Shown piece after piece: positions 5,932 to 27,033 of a stretch of DNA of 64,000 nt. A program made the position numbers and the translations under genes. Position 1 is the first letter of the stretch, and the number at the start of each line of letters is the position of its first letter. The notes beneath the pieces are model-generated. The model worked only from the letters and a program-made list of their open reading frames with translations. It ran no database searches and was not told the origin of the DNA. The stretch is from assembly GCA_004764695.1 (NCBI GenBank), contig SMSO01000014.1, positions 1,235,648 through 1,299,647 of the forward strand, given 5' to 3'. This DNA is from Schizochytrium sp. TIO01. Lineage: Eukaryota; Protista; Bigyra: Labyrinthulomycetes.

Positions 5932-6068
5932 AAGTCAATGAATGAATCAATGGGATAAAAAAATTGGCAAAACAGTCAATCACTCAACGAGCGCCCTTCC
6001 GTCTCGGTCGGACGCCTCTCCGCCTGCCGCTGCTCGCGCTGCCTCCGCCGCTGCCGCCTGCCGCCGCA

Positions 6069-8192
6069 ATGAAGAAGTCGAGGCCAGACTTCGCGGGCGA
6101 CGTCTCCCAGGGCACGCGCCAGCCCGGCCGGAGCCGCACGGAGGGTACGGACTCCATCTCGTGGCTGCTGGGCCCTCTGGTCTCTCCGGAGCACTTCATC
6201 GAGAGCGTCTGGCAGAAGGAGGCGCTTCACGTGTCCCGCGTGGACCTCGCTGCCAAGGAGGACGAGGAAGCACAGGCGGTTGAGGACGCACGCGCCGCCG
6301 CCTCCTCCTCCGCCGCAGCCTTTGCCGCGTCCGCCGCAGGAGGCTCGGCGTCCACGGCGACGTCCTCTGGTGCCTTCAGGCGCGGCAGCCGCAAGCGCAA
6401 GGGGAAAAGGGCTGTACAGTCTGCGCAGAGTTTTCAGAACACAAATTCAAAGGCTGGCGCAGAAGACGATGAGGACGGAGAGCACAAGCTCCCGGACGAC
6501 CTTGCGTCAAGATTGTTTAGCGTGGAGGATTTAATTGCACTGGTGAAGACGAATGAGTTTGTGTATGGAAGGGACCTGAATGTTGTGACGTGTGCAGATG
6601 GGAAGACCAAAGAGGTGGTCCACGAGGAAGGAGCGCCAGTGACGGAGAAGTCTATGAGGGCACACCTGAGGTCGTCCACGGTGCAGTTCTTTCAACCACA
6701 GAGGTATGTAAACGCGCTGTGGAAGCATATGGCAAGCTTAGAGGCGGATTTCGACGCTCTATGGGGAGCGAACGTGTACATCACGCCGCCATTGACGCAA
6801 GGACTCGCTCCTCATTACGATGATGTAGATGTCTTTGTGTTGCAGTGTGCTGGGGAGAAACGCTGGTTTGTGCACGATGCAGCAGAACCCTATCAAGTTC
6901 TGGCCATGGAGTACTCTGAGGATCTCCAGCGTCTTGGAAAGAAGCGTATGGAGGTCGTTCTACGCCCAGGTGACCTGCTCTACCTTCCCCGAGGAACGAC
7001 GCACTATGCCAAGGCGGAAGGCAATGAACACTCCGTCCACATCACACTTTCCACGCACCAGAACCTCACATACTACAACTTCCTCGAGTCTGCTTTCTCC
7101 AAGATTCTCGACGCTGCTGCATCTTCAGAAGTTAAATTTCGCCGTGGTCTCCCCGTAGGATATCTCGGGGGCAACGGCACGCTGGGCAAGGCTAACTGCA
7201 TCGGCCCTGGCCGTAAGATGCTCTCAATGTCCTCTGAGCTGCTGCACTGGATTGCAGACGAAATGGCGAACGCAGACCCTAACGAAAGTGGCAGCGTCGC
7301 AGAAGCCTTCCACGAAACGGTGGACGACTTTGCAGCCGACTTCATGATGGGTCGTCTCCCACCATTTGCGCAAACTGCCAGGGAAAATCCGCCTGTGGTT
7401 CTTCGGCTCACGGATAAGGTCCGTGTGTTGGACCCTCGTTATATTCTCGCACGCATCATTGATCCTGAAGACGATCAGGAGGGAAGTGGAGATGAAGAAG
7501 ACGGCGAGGAAGATGAAGAAGACATGGAGATGGGGGGAGACGACGAAGAGCAGACTGAGAGTAAAACTGCATCAACGGAGCCTGCTGTGACGGCAACCAC
7601 GGCCGCGAGCAATGGGGCAGCTGAGGCTTCAGAAACAGCCACGACCGCAGCAGCCAATGGAACCAACGCTCCTCAGCAGCAAACTGAAGGCAACGCAGAA
7701 GTAGGCCCCTCCGCTGGTGGTGAGGATGAGGGCGAGGAAGACGACGCAACACACACGAATGGAAACGGTCACAACACCAGGGATAATGAAGATGATGAGG
7801 AAGCATCAGATGGAGACGAAAACGCAGATGATGAAGAAGAAGATGATGATGAGGAAGGCGAAGATGATGATGAGGAGGACGAAGATGACGAACATGTCTT
7901 ACGTGTGTACTTTTCTCACGCTAACCGTCGCGAGGACCATATGGGCGCGCCAGTGCCTCTCTCAAAGGATCAGTTTCTTGATGTGCCATCAAACTCTGGA
8001 ATGCAGGAACTTTTGGGAAAGTTGTTCGCTGCTTACCCCTCTTCAGTGGCTGTAAAAGATCTCTTGAAAGATCCCGAGACAGCTCTCAAGCTGTCACAGT
8101 CACTTTTGGACCGCGGTGCGGTTGTGGTGCAGAACCGTGCATCTCAGGGATCTTCATCATCCTCATCTACGGCCTCTTCCTCATCCACATAA
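6069..8192 (+). CDS. NO66/RIOX1-MINA family JmjC (cupin_4) oxygenase with long acidic insertion
   Basis: GANVYITPP..QGLAPHYDDVDVFVLQ.AGEKRW and LRPGDLLYLPRGTTH (HxD...H iron ligands); first ATG 6069. Confidence 0.9.
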   Translation: MKKSRPDFAGDVSQGTRQPGRSRTEGTDSISWLLGPLVSPEHFIESVWQKEALHVSRVDLAAKEDEEAQAVEDARAAASSSAAAFAASAAGGSASTATSSGAFRRGSRKRKGKRAVQSAQSFQNTNSKAGAEDDEDGEHKLPDDLASRLFSVEDLIALVKTNEFVYGRDLNVVTCADGKTKEVVHEEGAPVTEKSMRAHLRSSTVQFFQPQRYVNALWKHMASLEADFDALWGANVYITPPLTQGLAPHYDDVDVFVLQCAGEKRWFVHDAAEPYQVLAMEYSEDLQRLGKKRMEVVLRPGDLLYLPRGTTHYAKAEGNEHSVHITLSTHQNLTYYNFLESAFSKILDAAASSEVKFRRGLPVGYLGGNGTLGKANCIGPGRKMLSMSSELLHWIADEMANADPNESGSVAEAFHETVDDFAADFMMGRLPPFAQTARENPPVVLRLTDKVRVLDPRYILARIIDPEDDQEGSGDEEDGEEDEEDMEMGGDDEEQTESKTASTEPAVTATTAASNGAAEASETATTAAANGTNAPQQQTEGNAEVGPSAGGEDEGEEDDATHTNGNGHNTRDNEDDEEASDGDENADDEEEDDDEEGEDDDEEDEDDEHVLRVYFSHANRREDHMGAPVPLSKDQFLDVPSNSGMQELLGKLFAAYPSSVAVKDLLKDPETALKLSQSLLDRGAVVVQNRASQGSSSSSSTASSSST

Positions 8193-8751: not shown

Positions 8752-10084
8752 TCACGAAACAGGAGAAGCAGGGTTCAGGGTCCAGTCGCTCATTTGAGAT
8801 TGGAAAACAGTTTGCAGCCTGGATCCTATGTGAAGTAGAAGCTGGGCAAAACCTTCACCAGTGACCGACCCATCTTTAACAACATCAGAGAATGTAATAT
8901 TGAGCCAGCGAAAGTTTTGCGGATAACTCAGTACAACAATTAGCCGACTACGCTGTGCACGATCATCATACCAAGCGACCGCACCTTGTGCAATCACTGA
9001 CGTGATGTGTTGAACTTTGCTGGTTGCAGTACCGTCTTCCGAGCGAGGTGCTGATGCGTTTTGATACGACCTCATGGCCTCATGCGTTGACCGTGTTGAA
9101 GTCATAGCTACAACTGTAGCTTTTGCTTTTCCAACAAAAGGATCAGACGGAGGGTTTTGCCCTGGGAGCCCTGTTTGCATAGTTGATGACGAAAGTTGTT
9201 GTGGATGAAGTTGCTGGGGTTTCTGAGGGCGTCCCGACACTTGCGGTGGAGGCAACACTAGATCCAGTACACTCTGGGGGCCTAAGAGTCGAGCGCGGCA
9301 TTAACTCATCTTTACGCTTAATAATAAAGACAACATCCTCGTCATTTGCTTTGAAAGAGACATCTGTTGGCTTATGATGCGGAGTATTCCAAGTCTTTCG
9401 ATTATACATAACTACAGTATCGTCATCAGGAACATCAACAGTCTCTAATTCAAGCGCCTTAAAGCTTAACAGCCGATCCATCTCTTCGGCACTCTGGTAA
9501 GCTTTCCAGTAGTAGTCGGCAACCTCATCGGCCTTCACGCCAGGAAACGACATGTCTAATCGTAGATTAAGACGTTTGACGTCGTCCATTCCTTGCCCCC
9601 TGCTACCAAAGAAGTTTTCGGTGACACAATGATGCAGTTGAAAATCATCCAAAGGAAAAACGTATGGCGCAGGGAGTTTAAGAGGCTTCCACGATTTAAG
9701 TGACTCTGCAACAAGTGCGTGGACATAGGATTGTGCAGCATCAGCACCTTCCCGGCATAAAACGCGCTGGCCTGCTAATGTGGAGGGTCCGGAGGCAAGT
9801 TTCATGAACGCCTGCATAAACTTTTGATGCATTTGCAACTGTAAACGTAATGCTGAATTCTCTCGAATAATGTCAACTGTTTCACTGGAGATATTATTCT
9901 GCACTTGCATTTCTAGTTGCTTGATCTTCGCCCTGAAGCTTTCGCGCTCATCCTTTAGCTGCTGATTTGTTTGGCGAAGCTGCTCAAGCTCATATTTACG
10001 TTTGAGGCGGCTTGCACGGCTCTGCTCTGCCGTGCGCTGCCGCTTCTTCTGTACCGCATCATCTTCGTCGGCATCCATGCTCAC
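8752..10084 (-). CDS. bZIP transcription factor with C-terminal globular domain (one frameshift near 9143-9300)
   Basis: KKRQRTAEQSRASRLKRK basic region plus leucine heptads; two overlapping ORFs (9143-10084 and 8752-9258) read as one gene. Confidence 0.8.
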
Positions 10085-13000: not shown

Positions 13001-13670
13001 AATGCTATAATAAATTTTGTATTACACAAAGCTCAGGCCTAGGAAGGCAGTGAGTAACTTAAAGTTGAACTTTAAAACTTAGACTTTAAGTTTCAGACCT
13101 CCCTCCTTCCTGTCCTGGACACACCTTCATGTGTTCGTTTCGTTCCGGAACGCATTGCCTACACGTTTCGAGTGAGCCTGTTGGGTACCCCAAAGTTGTA
13201 AGATAGATGTTCTGCCCTCCCAGCTAATGAGCCAGCTGAGATGATTTAATGATGTGATTTAACTTGGAGAGTTGTTGCAAGTCGTTAACTTGTCATCTAG
13301 AAACATATTCAACTTGAGCTTTAAGATCATGCCGTGAGACTTCAGAGTTTATGAGTTCACCGCGCTCCTATTAAAGTTTATGCTGCGACCAGGCTCTGTT
13401 TCTAGCCTAATAGGCAATGATTCTAAATAAGCCCGCTCTTTAAAAACAAAAATTAATTAATTAAAAAAAATGCCTTCATTGCAGGGTCGCAGTGTGAGTG
13501 ATGATTTATCATGAAATCCCCGATGAACTGTGACCCATATTTACATCAGAGCCGTCAATATGGCGCAAGCTTCCCCAAGTAACTTTGCATTCGCATGGAT
13601 GAAGTTTACTCCAATCGTTATGTCCTCTGCTTCTCGGGTACGCATTGCGCGGCACGTGCAGAACATGTTT

Positions 13671-13702
<32 letters not shown>

Positions 13703-14453
13703 TAAGTTCTTCCGAGTCAACTTAAAGAAAGTAAGCGATAAAACATTATAAGGCCTATGTTTCTTTCCTTATTTGTATTACAAAACACTTTCCTCATTTG
13801 GCGCGGGTGTGCTAAGATAAATGATAGGAGGACCATAGGAGGTACATTGGTTGTGCGATTCTGCTCTATAAAAAATGGAGGATTGAGCAAAAGAGCGAGA
13901 GATGATGAGGTCTGCTTGCCATGTGGCTTGGCAGATCATGATGGCTCAATTGGGATTGTTAGCGACTCAGCGAGGGAAGTGCAGAGAGCGTGAGGAACAC
14001 AAAGATCGCTCCATCTTCTCTAACGCGGGTACGATTGTGGCTCGAACTTGGCTCTGCAGTCTCACAACCTGCACACCTTGCTATTGGGCACTCTAACTAA
14101 AGAGCTTCTGATAAGCTCATTCATAGAAACACAAGTGAAGACACTCAATAGAAGCTTGGTCAAGGTCTCTCGGAAAACAAATCCTCAACTAGTGCAGTGA
14201 GGACTTGTGAAAGGACTGCAGGCTCCCAACGAGCTAGTCTTCTGCAAAAGGCTACTAAGCAGAGCGGTTAGTGTTGCGTTTGCTTTTCCTGCTACTTCGC
14301 TACTTTTACGGCACCACAGGGAATCACCAGAAATAACGGGGTGGCGTTCCATACAAAGTTTGGAGAGGAAACTAGTCTCGAAGCGTACAAGTAGCTTGCA
14401 CAAGTTTGCACAAGCATCAAATCGGGTATCTAAGGTGATACACCATCGACGCA

Positions 14454-17400
14454 ATGGATAGCAAAGCAAGTGGAACCAGGGAGCGGAGCTCTAGCAGGAT
14501 GTCTCCACCGTTTGCGCGCAGAATGCAAAGTTGGTCCAAGAAGTCTAGTAGAAGCTCAATTGCAGACACCCAACCCCCTAGAGGCCTTGATGTCATGAAG
14601 AACATTGTTGCCTCAACACGAAACCTGAATGTCGAACAGGTCAACTTGGCTCGGGCCAAAGGCCTTGATGAGGTCGGCGAAGAAGCCCTTCAAGAATGGG
14701 GTACAGCTATGGATGAAGCCAACCACAGGAGGATCGAATCAGGCAAAGTTGCTACTCGAGAATTTGATCAAGTAAATCGCGGTGTCTCCCTTGAATTTAT
14801 TCTGCGACTTGCTGAACATGTAAAATCCACAGAACCTCGTCTCTACAAAAAGCTCAAGACAAAGGACCTTGTTCATGGCTACCAAGCAGAGCTCAATTCG
14901 GACGGAAAATTTATCAATGGCGCTGACCCCCCCCCCTACTCCATCCGCGCTTTGACTCAGCCATGCTTAAGTAACATGGTTGACTTTTTCACGGACCATG
15001 CGGATCATCCTGCGAGTCTAGAGCTAAAGCAAAGGCTTCAGCAATATGACATTCCTGAACTTCGGAAATACACGCAAACTCAGCAAGCCTTGGCCACCCT
15101 GCGAAGTGATCATGTACAAATTCATGCGTCCATTGCAGACGAGGACGAGGATGTCAATGTTGACGAAGTCAGGGAGGAATTTGGCGAAGGAGCAAATGAT
15201 CGTGATGTCGAAGATATCCCATGGTTTGGTCGTGCAGATTACTTTGTCAGCCACGCCTGGATATCAAATTTCAGTGAGTTAGTGGAGGCGCTAAAAAACC
15301 CACGCTCAACAGGATCTGAATCTTTTGCACAACATATCAGAAAGTATTTCTGGATCGATGCATTTGCAGTGAATCAACATTACGACATCCCGGATGTTCG
15401 TGAAAATGCTCGCATTGCCAAGAAACGTAAAGAAGACCTCAACAACTTTGAATATGTCATTGAGAATGTTAATGAAGGTGTAGCTATCTTCATGTCTCCA
15501 TGGTTTGAGCCAACAATCCTCAACCGGTCATGGTGCTGGTACGAGATTGCAGTTGCTCTAAAAAACAGCAAGAAATTGAACATGGCTTTAACCAACAAGG
15601 CAGCGTCGGCTCTGCGAGAGGCTGCTACTGCATTTACTGAAGATGAAAGATTGCGAACGAAACAGCAGGAAAGACATGTCACAAGCTGCTCTACCATGCT
15701 CAGCAATATTGATGTGGAGTCTAGCAGCTGCACCCTGGATGTGGATCATGAATATATTATGCGACAGATTGAAGAAAAGTCAGGTGGTGCGTCACTTGTC
15801 ACTAAGCATGTGAAGCTGAATATTGCTGGACTTTTTATGACTACCGCAGACTCGCTGCTGGAGACACAGGACGCAAAGGGAATTGATCGGCTGTACAAGG
15901 CTTTAATTCAACAGTTTGATTCTGCTCCCCAAGAGCAAGCAGCAATGATGAACAAGCTCGTCCGTACGCTCATGGTCACTGGTCGGCTTGATCAAGCTGA
16001 GATGTTCTGCAAAGAGGCTATCGACATTCAGAATAGGCTCATTCAAAAGGAGCGTAATCCGAACAACCTAAAGAGCATCAAGCTTGATCTCGCGGTTAAT
16101 TTGAATTCATTGGGCCGCCTGTATGGCGAGACACCAAAACTTGACAATCTTGAGCAAGCACTATCAGCTCTTCATCAGGCAGAAGAAATCCGTCGCGAAT
16201 ATAGATCTCCTGATCTTCATGAGGTTTTGTATAATATCGGTCGTGTTCTTGTTTTACACTATGAGCAATGCTATGTCCCATCACTAGATTCAATAGCGAA
16301 ACGTGCTCAAGATTTACAAAAAGCCAAGAGTTTATTAGAGGAGTCTAGAGAGCTTCAAGATGAACTTCAACATGAACTTCAAAAAGTTTCCAAGAACAAG
16401 GTAATGCCTTCTCTAGGAGCGTGCTATGTGTTTCTTGGCAAGGTCACCGACCTACTAGGTAGCATAGAAGATAGCTATACCAATGTTGCAGACTGTGCAG
16501 CTGAATATGATGCAAGCAAAGATGAAGCATATGAATATTTTCAGCTGGGTGAACTTCAACAACAAAAGGATTTGGGCCGCATGACCCTCGGATCTATTTG
16601 ACCCAGCTTGATACAGCCCGACATTTCGTTCGCCCGCACACATGGGTGCCTAAAGCTGCATGGCGGCTTTTAGTAAATGCTCATAATAACTTACAAATCC
16701 AGGCTCATATGAAAGGTGTCAATGCAATCAAGATTCTCGAGTGTGAAGTGGAAATGATGAAGCTCTTACAGGATCTCAACACTTACCGGGAAGAAGACGT
16801 CATAGAAGAGGAGGAGTTCCCCGGAAGCTCAAACTTGATTGATGTGAGCTTAAAATCCATCAACTGGATTTATATGTATCGACCCCATCTGTATGATTCA
16901 AGAGAAGCCCAAGATCTCATCGAGTCAATTTTTGGCTTTGGTATCGAGAGGGCTGGTTCAAAGCAACTTCTGGCGCTTGGGATTTTGGAAAGGATGCCAG
17001 GGGCTACAATTGAATTCTCTAGTGAGTTCTGCCAAAAGGAGAGGGAATATATGTCACAGTTGCGAACACCTTCAAAATCACCGTTTGCTATTCCTGCTCA
17101 ACTCGAGATGGGGATGGAGACGATGCTTTCTGGCCTTCCTCCCGGCATTGCTGATATCATTGTAGCCGATCCTCCCTACAATATTTCAATTGACTCTACA
17201 TGGGATGAGGTGGGTCACCGCAAGTTTATACGAAACATCGAGTCATGGGCAAGTCACCTTGTGCGCGCTCTCTCGCCTGAAGGGATTGGTTTTGCCTTTT
17301 CTGACATGTCTTACGCATCTTATTGGATTCATGCACTCAGAACAGCTCGTGGCGACTCATCACCAGAAGTTATAGTTGAGTCGGCTATATGGTACAAACC

Positions 17401-17980
17401 AGACGCAGCCTGGAGAAAACAGTTTATTGATTCGAATCCTCAACTGAAGAGCTCATCAGCATTCGATGCTCCTCAGATTGTAAGAGAATCTACGGAGGTG
17501 GCGATTATATTTCGGCGGTCCTCGTCTGCTGCAGGGAAGTTTACTGATGTTTTGAGAAAGAAACTTAACAACGATGCAGCGAATGTGTGGAAAATCGGGA
17601 AATGTGTAGAACCTGAACGCTTGCAAAACGAATATTGGCACGCTGCTCAGAAGCCTCTTAGCCTAATGCGTATTTTAGTTGACATCGGTGTTGAGTTTGC
17701 CAAAGATCGACAAGCGAAATCAGCGGATCCTACGATTTCACTTCAAGATGTTAAAAAGCGTGATATTCTTGTCCTTGAGCCCTTTCTCGGTACTGGAAGC
17801 GGTTCCATTGCTTCTATGGAGCTGGGGCTTCCAGCGATTGGGTGCGACTTAGATTACAAAGATGTGGAGGCAACAAGATTTCGAATCGAAAGCATGATCT
17901 CTAAACCTGCCCCCAAATCCTCTTCATTTATCAGTCTTCGGAAAAGTATATCTGGATTTACTCGAACCAAAAAAAGATAA
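14454..17980 (+). CDS. HET/TIR-like domain - TPR - beta-class N6/N4 DNA methyltransferase fusion (1-nt frameshift at ~16571-16580)
   Basis: FVSHAW, FWIDAFAVNQH, RSWCWYEI; TPR helices; DIIVADPPYN (17168), HAAQKPLSLMRILV, VLEPFLGTGS (17777), IGCDLD; adding 1 nt at TTTGGGCCGC gives LGPHDPRIY and a 1175-aa frame. Confidence 0.8.
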
Positions 17981-18266
17981 TTATAAATCAAATTCATGAG
18001 CAACATAGTTAATCGAGGCATTTTCAGTCCAAATCTAGTTTTGTGTATGGCTCGGCCCATCGTATTTTTGTGTCCATGCTTAATGGAACCCTTTAGCTTT
18101 TACCAAGTCAGGGCACAAACGTATGCTCTCTTTCATTGAAGATACAATTTCAAAGCTTGTCTCGACTGAAGCAAAACAAATACACTATTCCAACATAAAA
18201 GGTAAGAAAAAAATAGTCAGATTGGACGCAGTTGCAGTTTATTTTCTTTTTTAAAGAAATATCTAT

Positions 18267-20090
18267 TTAATCGAGCTTGAGTTGTTTGTAAATGTATTTG
18301 GTAAAGGAAAGCGACGCAAAAAATCCTACCGTGCCAAGCATAAGGGATACACCATAAGATAGAATCAACATGTATCCGAAGAAGAAGGTGGTTTGAAGAG
18401 TTCCAGTCATACGGCTCCGTGCAGAGTAGTAATAGAATGAGTAGAGGTAGATGAAGATTCCGGTGGAGCCTCCAAAGAGCAAAGAGCGCCACCACCAACG
18501 GTGATCTTCAGCTGCCAACTGAAAGTATACCAACGTCACTGTAATTGCAGCGGTGACGGTGAGCAACAGGACAAATGCAAGGAAGAGAATACCGTAGAGA
18601 GAGTACACCTTATGCCCCCAAATGCTTGTGAAAATGTAGTGTACCTCAATGTAGATAGCACTGAAAGGGAGAAATCCAGCTACTAGCACTTGAGTAGCCG
18701 CCTTGTACCAAGGCGAAGCAGGGACCTGACGCGGCACCTTGCTTGTTCTACAAGGAGCCTCGAAAGGAGTGGCATTACGCTTACCAACAATAGCACCCAA
18801 AACTGTAAGCGGAAAGGTTGTCAAGAGATGAATGGCAAAGACAGAGACAATAGTCCAGAATGGCAATGCAGCGGTGGAGTCGTAGGAGATCGCCACAGTG
18901 TTGCAGACGCAAAACATAAGGAACAGAGGACCAGGGAAGAGCACGGAGGTCAGAACCGTGTTCCAAACCCAGTTAAAGCCACCCATCTGCTTGTACACAT
19001 AGGCAGAAACATAACCAGAAGTACCAGCAGTGAGAGGGTAAAGGACAGCAATCACCATTGGGAGGTTACCCTTCTTGCCCGGCGAAAAGGCAAAAAGAGC
19101 AAGAACCAGCAGAAGAACAGTTGTGCAAAGAAGGTGAGTTCCTGAACCCAGAATTGCCGCAAACAGAGTCTTGTTCATGGGGAACCGGAAAACATCGGCA
19201 TGGAGGAGCTTCCAGCCAGATTCATCCTCAGCACCAAATTCTTCCTCTTCATCAGCCAGAAGGTAACGCATGTCGTTATGAAGCACGCGAACCATGATCA
19301 TAGCGAGGAAAGTAGTCAGGAGAATGACTAAAACGAAACTGTTGATGATGCTGAGCCAGTGAATCTCCACGGTAGCGGGGAGAAAGTCTGCCTTCTGGTA
19401 GCGCTCTACGCGGTCTTCGTAGCGCACAGTAGACTCCTTCCACATTACAGCATAAGTGAAGTCCACGGTAATTTCTGAATCAACATCAGTAATGTCGAGG
19501 CGGGTTGTGGGCGACGTAGATACCTGTGCTGCAACAATGCGATCTCCATTGTACTCAATGTTAAAGATCAGATGCGTGTAAAGGTAGCGCTTTGCAGAGA
19601 TGCTTTCAAGAGACTTCTCGTCAAAGCTCTCAAGGGAAGGGAAGGAAGGTGCAGAGTCAAGAAGATTAGGTGTGTGAATGAGTCCCACGTAAGCCCACAC
19701 CGGAAGGTTGTCCACAAGCATTTCGAAGTAGTAATCCTCATCAACAGCCTTTTGAAACTTCTGTACGTCCTCAAGGCTCAAAGACTTTTTGCACAAACGT
19801 CCAAAGTGAAGCGGCACCTTGAATTTGATATCATAGTCTGTGAACACCTTGCGGTCGCCCGCAAGAATCTCGCCAAGATTATGCGATTGTTTTTCCATCT
19901 TTTCAGGCGCACAAAATGGCAACGAGTAGTACTCATATGTCTCTGTGGGATTGAAATACGGCCCAATCTTGTTTGCTACAACACGGACGACATCTCCATC
20001 GTTGTACTTCTCGCCTCCAGCGAGAGCAGTTTGTGCAAAGCATGCCAGAACTGCTGCCACGAAGGCCACCTGGGACTTGAAGCCAGTCAT
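18267..20090 (-). CDS. Transmembrane 9 superfamily (EMP70) protein, TM9SF1-like
   Basis: NKIGPYFNPTETYEYYSLPFC, EIHWLSIINS, ESGWKLLHADVFRFP, WWWRS, C-terminal KLD. Confidence 0.96.
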   Translation of the reverse strand: MTGFKSQVAFVAAVLACFAQTALAGGEKYNDGDVVRVVANKIGPYFNPTETYEYYSLPFCAPEKMEKQSHNLGEILAGDRKVFTDYDIKFKVPLHFGRLCKKSLSLEDVQKFQKAVDEDYYFEMLVDNLPVWAYVGLIHTPNLLDSAPSFPSLESFDEKSLESISAKRYLYTHLIFNIEYNGDRIVAAQVSTSPTTRLDITDVDSEITVDFTYAVMWKESTVRYEDRVERYQKADFLPATVEIHWLSIINSFVLVILLTTFLAMIMVRVLHNDMRYLLADEEEEFGAEDESGWKLLHADVFRFPMNKTLFAAILGSGTHLLCTTVLLLVLALFAFSPGKKGNLPMVIAVLYPLTAGTSGYVSAYVYKQMGGFNWVWNTVLTSVLFPGPLFLMFCVCNTVAISYDSTAALPFWTIVSVFAIHLLTTFPLTVLGAIVGKRNATPFEAPCRTSKVPRQVPASPWYKAATQVLVAGFLPFSAIYIEVHYIFTSIWGHKVYSLYGILFLAFVLLLTVTAAITVTLVYFQLAAEDHRWWWRSLLFGGSTGIFIYLYSFYYYSARSRMTGTLQTTFFFGYMLILSYGVSLMLGTVGFFASLSFTKYIYKQLKLD

Positions 20091-22119: not shown

Positions 22120-23982
22120 ATGCCTGGCGGGTCTTCGTCATCAAGTTCGTCTTCACCATCAGAGGAATGGGAGCTTAATGCTGTCTTCGTACCGGCGCGC
22201 GAATTTAGCGGCGCAAGGGATGGCTTTGTCTTCAAGAAGGGCGCTCAAGGTGTTGGCTACTATGAAGATAAAGCTCTCTCCAGTGCAGATAGTTTAGGTC
22301 GCAAAAGGCCACGACAAGAGGATGATTCCATCATCTCTGGATCTGTGAAGAGGTCGGTGACATCTTCATCGAGCTCTGGGAGTTCAATGCCTCCACCGAT
22401 TTCTAGAAGTCAAGAAGTCAAGGTGGAGCCTGCCCTTTCGGAACCAACCGTGGCAAAAATGTGCTCTCTACTTGAGAAAAAAATGCAAACTAACTTGGAG
22501 GAGCGCAGCAAGTTTGCCGATAACCCAGCTCGGTTCATGGAGTCAGAGATGGAACTTGACGAGGCTATTAGTTCGCTGAAACAAATTGCAAGTGCACCTA
22601 ATTTATACAGTGTCATGGCAAAAAGCGGGATCTCACGTACTTTGGTTGCGCTGCTCGCACACGAGAACGAAGAACTTGCTAAAGATGTCCTGTCACTCTT
22701 CGTCGAGCTACTGGAATCTGAAACGATGATGGAGGAGCCCAAGGATACACGACAGCTACTAGATGCTCTCTTAGATCAAGGCCTTCTCAACGCCATTGTC
22801 AGCAGCCTTTCACGATTTGACTCAAAGTCCGAGACCGGTGCTCTTGGCGTATATCATGTGATGACCATTATTGAAAATCTTGTTGAGTTGCGGTCCAAGC
22901 TTGCAGATAGCTTAGCCATAGAAACCCCCATCATTGATTATCTCCTAGATGTGGTTCAGGTGCTCAGTGACGAGGACCTATGTTTCTCGTGTGCTGAGAT
23001 TCTTAATGTGCTCCTTACAACTTCGATCCAGGCACAAGCTCATTTTCTGGAGCTGCCTCGGACAAAGACAATAGATAAAAACACAAAGTCTTCAGACAAC
23101 GAAACTGCCAGTCTTGATAACATGGAGCGTTTACTCATGGCCATTAACAAGTTTCGCCAGTATGATCCTGAGACCTTGCGAGAGCAGGAATTTATTGCAA
23201 ATGTGTTTAGCGCCCTACGCGGAGTCTTGCTTCCAATCCGACTGCGCAAGACTTTTGCCGAACATGAAGGCTTCATTCTTATGCTAAGAATTATCAAACA
23301 TCGACGGTTCGCTTACACATATGCCCTGCACGCCATTTGTGATGCCCTAGAAGACAACTCGGATAGCTGTGAACAGCTAGTCCAGGCTGATGGCTTGAAG
23401 ACGCTTTTTCCTCTTTTCATGGGCCGCAGCATTGGCATTAAAACTGGTAACCATAGTGGAAAGGGTGAAAAGCGTAAGCCTTTACGCAAGAAGTCTGAAA
23501 TTGAGGAAGAAGTTACGCGACATGTGATCCACATCTTATTCTTGCTGCTTTCAAGTTTACCACCCGAAAGCATTTCCTACCGCCGAATTGTACGCAAGTT
23601 CTCGGAAGATGATTTAGAAAAAACCGATCGTTTATTGGAACTGCATGTTGAGGTAGCACACAGACTTGCAGAAATAGGCGAAGGTGACGGGGAGGAGCTT
23701 CTTATGGCGCGTCTCGATGCCGGTCTTGAGACAGCACAGCATATTGCTGGCATTATTGGCCACATCTGCTCCACTGGGCGTCTTACTTTAATCGAACGTG
23801 TCAAATCTCGTCTTCATGAAAATCGGCTTTCCCTACCAGCCATTAAAAAAATTCTTGACGATTATGCAGAGGATCTCACGGTTTTGCCAACTGATGACAA
23901 TGCAGAGCAGGTCCAAGCTTCCAAGCGTATGCAAAATCATGTGCGTAACCTTTCCAGAAAGGTAGCTGCTTTCTGCAGCTGA
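22120..23982 (+). CDS. CTNNBL1: Beta-catenin-like protein 1 (Prp19 complex)
   Basis: RSKFADNPARFMESEMELDEAI, LLAHEN, GLKTLFPLFMG, KFSEDDLEKTDRLLELH, RLDAGL. Confidence 0.93.
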   Translation: MPGGSSSSSSSSPSEEWELNAVFVPAREFSGARDGFVFKKGAQGVGYYEDKALSSADSLGRKRPRQEDDSIISGSVKRSVTSSSSSGSSMPPPISRSQEVKVEPALSEPTVAKMCSLLEKKMQTNLEERSKFADNPARFMESEMELDEAISSLKQIASAPNLYSVMAKSGISRTLVALLAHENEELAKDVLSLFVELLESETMMEEPKDTRQLLDALLDQGLLNAIVSSLSRFDSKSETGALGVYHVMTIIENLVELRSKLADSLAIETPIIDYLLDVVQVLSDEDLCFSCAEILNVLLTTSIQAQAHFLELPRTKTIDKNTKSSDNETASLDNMERLLMAINKFRQYDPETLREQEFIANVFSALRGVLLPIRLRKTFAEHEGFILMLRIIKHRRFAYTYALHAICDALEDNSDSCEQLVQADGLKTLFPLFMGRSIGIKTGNHSGKGEKRKPLRKKSEIEEEVTRHVIHILFLLLSSLPPESISYRRIVRKFSEDDLEKTDRLLELHVEVAHRLAEIGEGDGEELLMARLDAGLETAQHIAGIIGHICSTGRLTLIERVKSRLHENRLSLPAIKKILDDYAEDLTVLPTDDNAEQVQASKRMQNHVRNLSRKVAAFCS

Positions 23983-24420: not shown

Positions 24421-27033
24421 TTAAAGAAAAAGCTCTTGAGCCATTTTATTAAAGCTTTCGAGCAACTTGGATGAGTCTTCATTTGGCAAAGAGAATGCAG
24501 ATATAAAGTGGTTTTCGGGCGCGTGGTAGCGCATGATTATATCCTGAAAAGATGACGTTGCAGAAGGAAGGACAATAAGGTGAGAAATCTCTGATAAATG
24601 ACGAGCATCGAGGACTCGAAAGGTAAGTTGTTCAAGGTCACCAAGTCGTGCGAGCTGGCTCCGACGGATGAACTTTCGTGTTCGCGGAGGAGAAGCGCCC
24701 TTGGCTTGGAGAAAGAAAATTCGATAACTTGTGATGCACATGATACCTGGCATTGAGTCAGACCCCCCGAGATTAATAGGATATAATGACCAATGCTGCA
24801 ATTTCAAAGGACGAAGAATACTCAGTGAAACAATGCCTCCTCGATATAAACCACTCAATTCATGCCTTGCCTGTGCTGCACTAGCAGGTAGATAATTAGA
24901 GAGATCTGATTTAGACTCAGTGAAGGTATCAACAGATTCAAGTGTTTTAGTTTGGGGCTGCAGAAGCTCTTCTTCTACGCTGGAGTGCGCAGTATCAATA
25001 ATGCGAATTTGATCTTGCAAGCTAGACTGTCGAGACTTACGATCGGCGTCTCGAACAGCCTTTTCTCGGGCAAGAGTTTCAGCTGAGAGACCTCCAAAGC
25101 CAAGAGTTAATTTCATCTTGTCTGACCAGGATTTGGCTTTTCTAGGATTTTCTTTGGAATCGTGGGTCCGTGTCTGAGGTGATCGTGCATAAGCTTGCGG
25201 CGATGATTGTGCATTTGGAAGCGGGAGGGTCGTCGGAGAAGATTTCGTAAACCAAGAACCAAGCACAGATGACACATTCTCTCGCGCCGCCATCACTGAG
25301 GATGCCACACGATTGCCAGTTGCGGATCCTGTAAGCTCGTTTAGACTTTCCTGAGCATGCTTCAGCCTGCTCTTTTGCTTTTGTTGTTGTTGTAATTTTT
25401 GTTGTTGTGCCAGGTATGCTCGAGTCTCGTCGTCATAGAAAGCTTCTTCGATCACATTAAGAGGAGTGGATGCGCGTAGAATTTTGGCCTCCTCGCAAAG
25501 CTGGACTGCATCGCTGGCTGGGATACGAGCCACAGCCGAGCGTAGGACGTCAAGAAAGTGCTGCGGAGATGTATCATCGCCTTCCATAAGAGATTGCCTG
25601 CATTTCACAAGCAGGGCAATCATCATATATACAGCGAGTGGGCCTCGGGGATCGCATCCTTCCCACACCCCAGTAAGAAGGGAAGCGTGAGAAGGTCCCT
25701 CATCGCCATTATTTTCCGGGCAAGCATCTACAATTAGGAGGTCCCAGATTGTCAAGAGAGAAGACACAACCACTTCACCAGCAAAAGCACAGCGCCACCA
25801 TCTCCAAGGAATAACAACCTGTGGAGGACCGATAGAGAATACTCTATGAGCGAGTTCTTCATCATGTAAACGCAACACAAGCTCGAGAAGCTTTGCGCGC
25901 TTGGCAAGAATCGAAGGGACAACTGCATCATCATCGGGAAACTGAAGTAAAAGTACCCTCTTGCGACGCAACTCCTGAATGAGCGGCGCGATGTGGAAAG
26001 GTGAAAGTTTCAGTATCGGCGAGGCAAGTACATATACTACATCAGCAATACCTGGGTCGCAGAGAGAGATTTCAACATCAAAGGCACGAACCACAACGCG
26101 GGTATGCATGATGACTTCTACATGGAGGTCATCTGCATGTGCATCACGTAGAATTTCGTCAGGATCGTCAATTCCAAGCCTGCGCTGTTCTTCTACGAGA
26201 CCTGCATGACGGATTATGGTGCTCTCTGTCATTGCTTTGAGGACACTATCTTCATCCTCGCGAGAAGGTTGTTGGTCACGTCCGTGTTGGCGAGGTGAAA
26301 CCCGAACATCATCTCTAGTATGGAGCAGCTTGCACCAGACATCAGCTCGATATTTTGGGTGAACACGACCGAGGCGCTGACACACGGTCATGATTTCTCG
26401 CACATTGCTTGCGTTACCTTCGTTGTTTAGAATACTTTGAAGCCTTGCCAAGAGATCAGACTCCTCTTCAGGATCACATTCATGCTTTGATTCTGACTCT
26501 GATACAAGCTTGACAGCCTCACGATGGTGCTTTGCTTCAGGAGTTTCATCTCCACCATCCACTAGCCAGTCGAGAAAATCTCCACTTTCTGAGCTTGTCC
26601 GTTCTTTAAGGCCTCTCTTTGAGGACTTTGAGGTTTCCACTTTTAGACCATTCATATCAGACTTTAACTGAGATCTTGCCTTCCTTGCTGACGTAGTGCC
26701 GTTTTCGCCATCTTTAGGTCTAGAATTGTCATCAGCAGGGCTCATGCTAAGCCCAAGATCTTCAGCTTCCTGGTCATCAGCAGCATCATCTTCATCTGCT
26801 GCATCGTCAATTTGCTGAGCTTTACGTTGATCTGGCGACTGATTTGCTACGAAACTTTCCTCGTCGCTTTCCTCGTCATCTAAATTCTCATGGTCATCCC
26901 TCAAGAAATCGAGTACAGGGTCATCGTGCGCAATAGTTTCTGCCCGGTCGTCACCATCGCCAGCAAACGCATCCCGCGGCAGACCTACTTCGTCTAGAAG
27001 CTGCAAGAAATCATCATCCTCGTCTGACTCCAT
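24421..27033 (-). CDS. Divergent TBC (Rab-GAP)-like protein with acidic N-terminus
   Basis: YRADVWCKLL, IPWRWWRCAFA, LLTIWDLLI resemble a TBC fold; catalytic motifs are degenerate. Confidence 0.65.
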   Translation of the reverse strand: MESDEDDDFLQLLDEVGLPRDAFAGDGDDRAETIAHDDPVLDFLRDDHENLDDEESDEESFVANQSPDQRKAQQIDDAADEDDAADDQEAEDLGLSMSPADDNSRPKDGENGTTSARKARSQLKSDMNGLKVETSKSSKRGLKERTSSESGDFLDWLVDGGDETPEAKHHREAVKLVSESESKHECDPEEESDLLARLQSILNNEGNASNVREIMTVCQRLGRVHPKYRADVWCKLLHTRDDVRVSPRQHGRDQQPSREDEDSVLKAMTESTIIRHAGLVEEQRRLGIDDPDEILRDAHADDLHVEVIMHTRVVVRAFDVEISLCDPGIADVVYVLASPILKLSPFHIAPLIQELRRKRVLLLQFPDDDAVVPSILAKRAKLLELVLRLHDEELAHRVFSIGPPQVVIPWRWWRCAFAGEVVVSSLLTIWDLLIVDACPENNGDEGPSHASLLTGVWEGCDPRGPLAVYMMIALLVKCRQSLMEGDDTSPQHFLDVLRSAVARIPASDAVQLCEEAKILRASTPLNVIEEAFYDDETRAYLAQQQKLQQQQKQKSRLKHAQESLNELTGSATGNRVASSVMAARENVSSVLGSWFTKSSPTTLPLPNAQSSPQAYARSPQTRTHDSKENPRKAKSWSDKMKLTLGFGGLSAETLAREKAVRDADRKSRQSSLQDQIRIIDTAHSSVEEELLQPQTKTLESVDTFTESKSDLSNYLPASAAQARHELSGLYRGGIVSLSILRPLKLQHWSLYPINLGGSDSMPGIMCITSYRIFFLQAKGASPPRTRKFIRRSQLARLGDLEQLTFRVLDARHLSEISHLIVLPSATSSFQDIIMRYHAPENHFISAFSLPNEDSSKLLESFNKMAQELFL

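Follow-up and report, generated by a model that had tools for sequence, protein, structure and literature searches.

An intact Schizochytrium gene joins a divergent TIR-like domain and TPR-like repeats to a bacterial-type amino-methyltransferase

The stretch of DNA analysed here, referred to as the window, comprises 64,000 nucleotides of Schizochytrium sp. TIO01 (NCBI GenBank assembly GCA_004764695.1, contig SMSO01000014.1, positions 1,235,648 to 1,299,647 of the forward strand). Its positions 14454-17980 are one intronless gene for a protein of 1175 amino acids, in which an N-terminal region is followed by a TIR-like domain, a TPR-like array and a methyltransferase, and which an assembly error or a private mutation has split into two open reading frames (ORFs). 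The parts are of known kinds and stand in a combination for which no description was found. Taken together, the data lean, with slightly better than even confidence, towards the combined statement that this one gene would encode a regulated, active methylase module. The features of the gene are the following, in positions of the window:

14454-17980, + strand: open frame that encodes the fusion protein, 1175 codons and a stop with the missing base counted, starting at the first ATG of the transcript-like contig
14454-15215, + strand: N-terminal region, amino acids 1-254, without recognisable domain, 32% identical to the Hondaea ortholog
15216-15653, + strand: divergent TIR-like domain, amino acids 255-400, with the blocks FVSHAW, WIDAFAVNQ and RSWCWYE
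15543-15545, + strand: codon of Glu364, candidate counterpart of the TIR catalytic glutamate, invariant in 31 sequences
15711-17098, + strand: TPR-like helical repeat region, about amino acids 420-882, with a TPR_12 match at 15936-16040 and an LG.DHP-type signature across the frameshift site
16564-16567, + strand: A-run that is one base short in the window assembly, so that a stop seems to occur at 16599-16601 and the ORFs overlap by 4 nt
17153-17866, + strand: beta-class N6/N4 amino-methyltransferase domain (PF01555) with DPPY, HAAQKP and PFLGTGS
17931, + strand: second window-private difference, T in the window against A in all four runs compared, Ile to Asn in the C-terminal tail near the gene end
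14223-18012, + strand: gene-sized contig of 3796 nt from run X5, covering both ORFs with one gap (the extra base) and no joints

In the assembly as deposited, ORF1 (14454-16601, + strand, 715 amino acids, ATG start) and ORF2 (16598-17980, + strand, 460 amino acids, listed from a TTG) share 4 nt. These ORFs, their overlap and the quoted motifs, as given by an initial annotation made from the letters alone, were all found in place by translation, namely FVSHAW at 15243-15260, WIDAFAVNQ at 15351-15377, RSWCWYE at 15525-15545, DPPY at 17168-17179, HAAQKP at 17639-17656 and PFLGTGS at 17780-17800. Upstream of ORF2, frame 2 stays open and reads GFGPHDPRIYLTQLDTARH, a TPR_10/12-type signature, and the repeat signature GFGPHDPRIYLTQLDTA sits at the junction. 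The window was compared over 13600-18400 with contigs from four public runs of four independent studies (X1, X5, X8 and X15), the runs being read as contigs, and each of the four is one base longer than the window at the A-run 16564-16567: X1, X5 and X8 have an additional A after 16563, thereby a fifth A, and the more divergent X15 has a G after 16564, giving CAG AAA with a synonymous codon. In the same line, a word-index search of the Logan assemblies retrieved a protein of 1128 amino acids (P0001) that is 100% identical to ORF1 where covered, that carries both TPR_12 and PF01555, and that runs continuously through the junction as ...ELQQQKGFGPHDPRIY...; this naturally intact protein was used in the homology searches next to ORF1 and ORF2, which were searched separately.

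The initial annotation had proposed that one added base would restore a TPR-type LGPHDP junction and a protein of 1175 amino acids. The single missing base and the length, counted from the ATG at 14454, are borne out, but the site is slightly different and the real junction reads QQQKGFGPHDP (ELQQQKGFGPHDPRIY) rather than LGPHDP. Its view that there is one gene rather than two also stands, the stop at 16601 being absent in all four data sets. Since every run carries the extra base, this stop most likely stems from a homopolymer error in the assembly; a mutation private to the sequenced stock is the less likely source. Programmed frameshifting or transcriptional slippage at the A-run was considered and rejected as unneeded, because the extra base is already present in DNA-like contigs that span several genes at even depth (13.5 kb in X1, 15 kb in X8), and X15 has CAG at this place.

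Regarding expression, the X5 contig at 14223-18012 has a depth of 17.8, and is flanked by a 205-nt contig at depth 2.1 and by a contig of the TM9SF gene at depth 109.9. Such gene-sized contigs of unequal depths are the reason why X5 is probably a transcriptome; if it is RNA, a single unspliced message contains both halves of the gene, and the contig has a leader of 231 nt before the start, with no upstream ATG. The gene is thus probably transcribed as a single message. In terms of selection, X15 differs from the window by 13 changes in the coding sequence (position 17931 excluded), 11 silent and 2 replacement. In a binomial test this silent excess has p 3e-6 if a share of 0.22 of neutral changes is taken to be silent, and p 3e-4 if that share is set generously to 0.35. 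The silent changes are distributed over both halves, and the gene is under purifying selection. As a separate observation on strain variation, five or six clustered substitutions common to X1, X8 and partly X15 were seen in the upstream intergenic segment 13815-13991 of the window, where the variation is much denser than in the coding sequence.

A second thraustochytrid genus has kept the fusion over its whole length. The best relative of ORF2 is P0002 (GBG29630.1) from Hondaea fermentalgiana, deposited just as "Methyltransferase", and this protein is colinear with P0001 across 1100 residues at 41% identity, junction repeat included; the same architecture, for which the initial annotation had proposed a search of protist proteomes, is therefore found outside Schizochytrium. 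By region, the methylase shares 58.5% identity with this ortholog, the TIR-like domain 51%, the TPR region 42% and the rest 32-37%.

At the C-terminal end, the claim of a complete beta-class methyltransferase is confirmed by Pfam: residues 186-423 of ORF2 match N6_N4_Mtase (PF01555) with 58.7 bits (cut-off 26.7) and E 1e-15. The match covers model positions 2-216 of 221 and scores 59.8 bits in a six-frame search of the genome. The NCBIfam and PADLOC models for CcrM-like and type II methylases concur on ORF2. The order of the motifs, IV (DPPY) and then I (PFLGTGS), is the circularly permuted one of the beta class, and DPPY, H..QKP and FxGxG align with conserved columns of bacterial homologs (DPPY, DPFxGSGTT). 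Among solved structures, M.MboIIA, CcrM and M.RsrI are nearest in sequence, with an E of 2.5e-5 at best. Within the 64-Mb genome, both the PF01555 model and the ORF2 protein match this single locus, and at least one MT-A70 gene is present elsewhere.

A HMMER scan of 1.84 billion representatives with ORF2 returned six proteins below E 1e-10, ordinary prokaryote-type methylases starting at about E 1e-7. In a quick maximum-likelihood tree made with IQ-TREE, a methylase phylogeny having been proposed as a check, the window protein groups with the Hondaea and Cymbomonas proteins, one Logan protein and one ENA protein (Shimodaira-Hasegawa-like approximate likelihood ratio test, SH-aLRT, 97). This clade is small and eukaryote-only, has its own signature WYKPDAAWR, and has no resolved prokaryotic sister in that tree. 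P0007, from Picozoa, was rejected as a member, as it falls outside the clade. Viral and metagenome contigs scanned with the clade alignment gave nothing close, with one distant match each. The methylase is an old, domesticated acquisition, neither contamination nor a recent transfer, because it occupies a single locus among eukaryotic neighbours and its guanine-cytosine (GC) content is unremarkable: that of the gene matches the surroundings, the window being near 45%. Of the horizontal acquisition put forward by the initial annotation, the prokaryote type of the enzyme stands, but a recent transfer does not, in view of the GC content, of prokaryote-like matches at E 1e-7 or weaker and of the eukaryote-only clade, and no donor can be named.

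Two kinds of clade members deserve separate mention. P0089 (KAK3250002.1, 655 amino acids), from the green alga Cymbomonas tetramitiformis, matches PF01555 over two stretches and also gives a weak D12-class signal; it may therefore be a tandem methylase. P0005 and P0090 (819-830 amino acids, on ENA contigs of 320-355 kb) are fused to MORN repeats. The blocks FVSHRW and WLDFFSIDQ at the N-terminus of P0005 and P0090 look similar by eye to those of the TIR-like N-domain, but the profile gives E 0.07, a motif-only resemblance, and these proteins were not counted as sharing this domain.

The N-terminal half was described initially as HET/TIR-like. In an alignment of 31 sequences, W300, D302, R358, W360, C361 and E364 are invariant, and an AlphaFold model built with this 31-row alignment reaches a predicted local distance difference test score (pLDDT) of 84.8, with a beta-alpha fold of four strands; with 17 paralogs only, the pLDDT was 63 and fold searches were uninformative. 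Nearly all of the top 50 Foldseek matches of the model are TIR or nucleoside deoxyribosyltransferase structures (best E 0.02, probability 0.97). A VIA search of 48,161 representative chains placed ThsB, SpbK, SARM1, TIR-1 and RPP1 on top with Z about 7, its top 27 being almost all TIR or nucleoside deoxyribosyltransferase (Z 5.4-7.0), and AbTir compared with the model gives Z 8.1. The assignment to a TIR-type fold is made because the match list consists almost entirely of one superfamily, more than because of the Z values, which are moderate. The model thus indicates that the N-domain, with its candidate catalytic Glu, falls within the TIR/deoxyribosyltransferase fold class as a divergent representative; it is not a demonstrated TIR or HET member. 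Of the hybrid label, the motifs, the predicted fold and the invariant Glu hold, but a Pfam match to HET, TIR or TIR_2 does not accompany them.

The N-domain belongs to a family with at least 32 loci in this genome by profile, in long intronless ORFs, most of which have TPR repeats downstream. Some of these loci are clustered in tandem on C30 (7.02-7.53 Mb) and on C24 (1.314-1.329 Mb), where the open frames measure 885-1666 amino acids. In several clustered paralogs, about 450 residues without assigned domain precede the TIR-like domain. In the gene itself, TPR_12 matches ORF1 residues 495-529 barely above the cut-off (31.4 bits against 30.1), and TPR scores in paralogs reach 288 bits; Pfam detects no NACHT, NB-ARC or other NTPase in either ORF or in nine paralogs. 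Beyond this genome, protein searches with ORF1, the N-domain region and the N-domain profile gave very few relatives, counts that are limited by the length window and the word index; these include a record of the dinoflagellate Durusdinium annotated "kinesin light chain" and metagenome proteins. One of the latter, P0083 (JGI metagenome, 1086 amino acids), shares this N-domain, continues with TPR repeats and carries at its C-terminus an Exo_endo_phos (nuclease/phosphatase) domain, so that the end domain of the family is exchangeable. In the ESM Atlas, the N-domain found two unnamed eukaryotic clusters, below 0.8, and the N-terminal region (amino acids 1-254) found nothing. The N-domain profile has no match among PDB chain sequences at E up to 10, and a search of the whole genome for HET gave no locus, the control genomes being prokaryotic and hence without a positive control.

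Besides, the genome contains 43 canonical TIR_2 (PF13676) loci, such as C30:12329-12637, C32:39531-39857, C7:37534-37842 and C8:69345-69653, none of which coincides with the TIR-like/TPR family. Many of them lie in ORFs of ~850-870 amino acids and several at less than 70 kb from contig ends, which suggests that the genome has another large TIR gene family, possibly at subtelomeric sites.

In terms of function, the TPR array would bind a partner or ligand and thereby control or target the two enzymatic ends of the protein. The methylase would be active and would transfer an N6-methyl group onto adenine in DNA, at sites that differ from those of the genome's own MT-A70 system. Adenine in DNA is proposed because motif IV is DPPY and not SPPY, by analogy with DPPY enzymes, and activity is suggested because the motifs are intact, because the methylase is the best-conserved segment and because there is no paralog that a bait could imitate. 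The TIR-like domain would self-associate, or would use Glu364 to cleave nicotinamide adenine dinucleotide (NAD) or a similar nucleotide. Because the N-domain family is expanded, tandemly clustered and equipped with swappable enzyme domains, a part in biological conflict, directed at viruses or mobile DNA, is favoured, the methylase then acting as effector and not as bait. A function as immune receptor would be plausible, as the initial annotation had suggested; the conflict-effector reading on its own is nevertheless held tentatively, as a possibility with the balance tipping against it. Its most specific form, a one-chain defence enzyme in which a TPR sensor would activate both an NAD-cleaving TIR-type domain and an adenine methylase marking viral or mobile DNA, for example of mirusviruses, is rated improbable.

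Several observations weigh against this reading of a regulated enzyme with a TIR-type front end. At E up to 1, ORF1 has no Pfam match to TIR (PF01582) or TIR_2 (PF13676), nor to HET (PF06985), and fold Z-scores of 7-8 are middling on the scale of the tool. An hhalign comparison with the TIR_2 domains of this genome is out of register when untrimmed (probability 3%), and after trimming it is in register but weak (P 0.004, probability 9%), pairing FVSHAW with DVFLSHAWG, W-x-D with W-x-D and WC..E with C..EF; it is only in this weak alignment that Glu364, which the model puts in the helix following strand 3, comes to stand opposite the Glu that is invariant in the TIR_2 domains. That X5 is an RNA run is guessed. 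Motif IV is DAPY in the Hondaea ortholog and DSPY in two shorter relatives, so that, from these sequences, catalysis may be relaxed or altered in the methylase clade. A 1:1 ortholog and a low ratio of replacement to silent substitution rates (dN/dS) are unlike the usual fast-evolving immune receptors, and point to a stable, possibly regulatory role. Finally, the window itself has A4 and the stop at 16599-16601, and none of the four runs is identical to it. The frameshift could then be real in the assembled stock, leaving a young pseudogene, or a TIR-like/TPR protein with at best a separate non-ATG methylase. This is very unlikely, as X5 and the window agree over 3.8 kb except at two places, one of them a homopolymer length, and at both all four runs disagree with the window; ORF2 moreover lacks an ATG start and begins within a TPR repeat, and no further damage is seen in either half.

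The same 1:1 orthology and strong purifying selection also suit a housekeeping or regulatory methyltransferase without conflict role, which would set a DNA or RNA mark for normal regulation and keep the TPR and TIR-like parts as inherited scaffolds. The gene is single-copy and stands among ordinary genes (JmjC, TM9SF, CTNNBL1, RabGAP), adaptor-only function is common among TIR domains, and chromatin or RNA roles have been proposed for several other bacterial-origin eukaryotic methylases (Iyer et al., PMC4738411). However, the Glu, the Trp-x-Asp and the Arg-x-Trp-Cys are invariant in 31 family members, suggesting an active site over a scaffold, the N-domain family is expanded and tandemly clustered with relatives bearing other enzyme domains, and the methylase clade is very rare and patchy in eukaryotes; we thus regard this alternative as unlikely, although a serious one. 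An integrated decoy, the other option of the initial annotation, would make the methylase a bait that is bound or modified by a virus factor, the TPR and TIR-like parts reporting the event and methyl transfer being irrelevant. Plant nucleotide-binding leucine-rich-repeat proteins (NLRs) often carry decoys after the repeat array, which is where the extra domain is placed here, and the variation of motif IV in the ortholog and relatives (DAPY or DSPY) would agree with a bait. This option is disfavoured and has a slim chance at most: the 64-Mb genome has no other, free-standing PF01555 protein to imitate, the methylase is the most conserved segment (58.5% to the Hondaea ortholog), and all S-adenosylmethionine-binding and catalytic motifs are intact in this species. 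For a family as overwhelmingly prokaryotic and viral as PF01555, one could think of a methylase half that stems from contaminating bacterial or phage DNA, or from a very recent transfer wrongly joined to a protist gene. Independent studies provide contigs of 13-15 kb in which the gene lies together with its eukaryotic neighbours, the GC content fits the surroundings, the same fusion exists in Hondaea and prokaryote-like matches have E 1e-7 or weaker. The independent spanning contigs and the Hondaea fusion refute such a misjoin, whose probability is close to nil. The preferred reading accordingly remains the one of a single gene for a methylase module that would be active and regulated.

When compared with known systems, the methylase shares its Pfam family, its motif order and H..QKP with beta-class restriction-modification or orphan N6-adenine methylases (M.MboIIA, M.RsrI, CcrM). 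The likeness is limited to the motif regions, and here there is no partner endonuclease and the enzyme is fused behind 880 TIR-like/TPR residues. Among eukaryotic enzymes, the bdelloid N4CMT combines an SPPY-type motif with a chromodomain. Like this N4CMT (PMC8885841) and clades 2 and 3 of group 1 of Iyer et al. (PMC4738411), the present gene is a prokaryotic amino-methyltransferase kept as a conserved nuclear gene with eukaryotic fusion partners. The bdelloid rotifer enzyme writes N4-methylcytosine (4mC) (PMC8885841), clade 2 is PPR-fused with a Ser in motif IV, and clade 3 occurs only in Naegleria (PMC4738411); none of these is joined to a TIR-like or TPR module, whereas motif IV is DPPY here.

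As for the N-domain, it resembles TIR NADases and adaptors (SARM1, plant TNL TIRs, ThsB, AbTir, SPARTA TIR-APAZ) in its predicted four-stranded alpha/beta fold and in colinear blocks, with F-x-S-H on strand 1 and W-x-D on strand 2; the invariant Glu364, in the helix after strand 3, is a candidate counterpart of their catalytic Glu. It differs from them by its R-x-W-C-x-x-E block and a long insert after strand 2, both family-specific, and by the lack of a Pfam TIR match. Likewise, fungal HET domains (PF06985), with whose three-block consensus the blocks were compared, are alike in this pattern and in their front position in repeat proteins of an expanded family, but no NACHT or NB-ARC stands here between the N-domain and the repeats, and the Pfam HET model is unmatched. 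The hybrid HET/TIR label fits an earlier proposal (Dyrka et al. 2014, PMC4986451) in which HET is distantly related to TIR and has homologs in stramenopiles. Within its own TIR-like/TPR family of at least 32 loci, the protein has the same N-domain followed by TPR and is the sole member with a methylase.

The eukaryotic adenine-methylase fusions of Iyer et al. (PMC4738411) include PPR, FHA and chromatin domains, and none with TIR-like or TPR parts. A search of full-text literature on N6_N4_Mtase in eukaryotes, on HET, TIR and TPR in protists and on TIR in thraustochytrids found no description of this architecture, in keeping with the initial annotation, which knew of no such description. Eukaryotes seldom keep bacterial-type amino-methyltransferases, and the few that were studied, such as the bdelloid N4CMT, defined new epigenetic systems. 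Here, the genome has a single methylase of this family, which is conserved between genera and is tied to a TIR-type domain and a TPR array of a large unannotated protist family. In the thraustochytrid Aurantiochytrium limacinum, N6-methyladenine (6mA) of the MT-A70 type (AMT1-type) is reported to lie near transcription starts (PMC12695648), and persistent mirusviruses are reported to be present (PMC12606086). For the present gene, the question is whether a second, bacterial-type DNA mark exists beside the MT-A70 6mA, and whether it bears on virus control. Were the defence-enzyme reading true, a methylation-based immune effector would be wired to a TIR module, for which no counterpart is known to have been described in any kingdom.

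Around the gene, an ORF of 313 amino acids at 9143-10084 has no Pfam family. The neighbouring long intronless ORFs, at 5964-8192, 18267-20090, 22120-23982 and 24421-27033, belong to JmjC, TM9SF/EMP70 and CTNNBL1, together with a weak RabGAP-TBC match.

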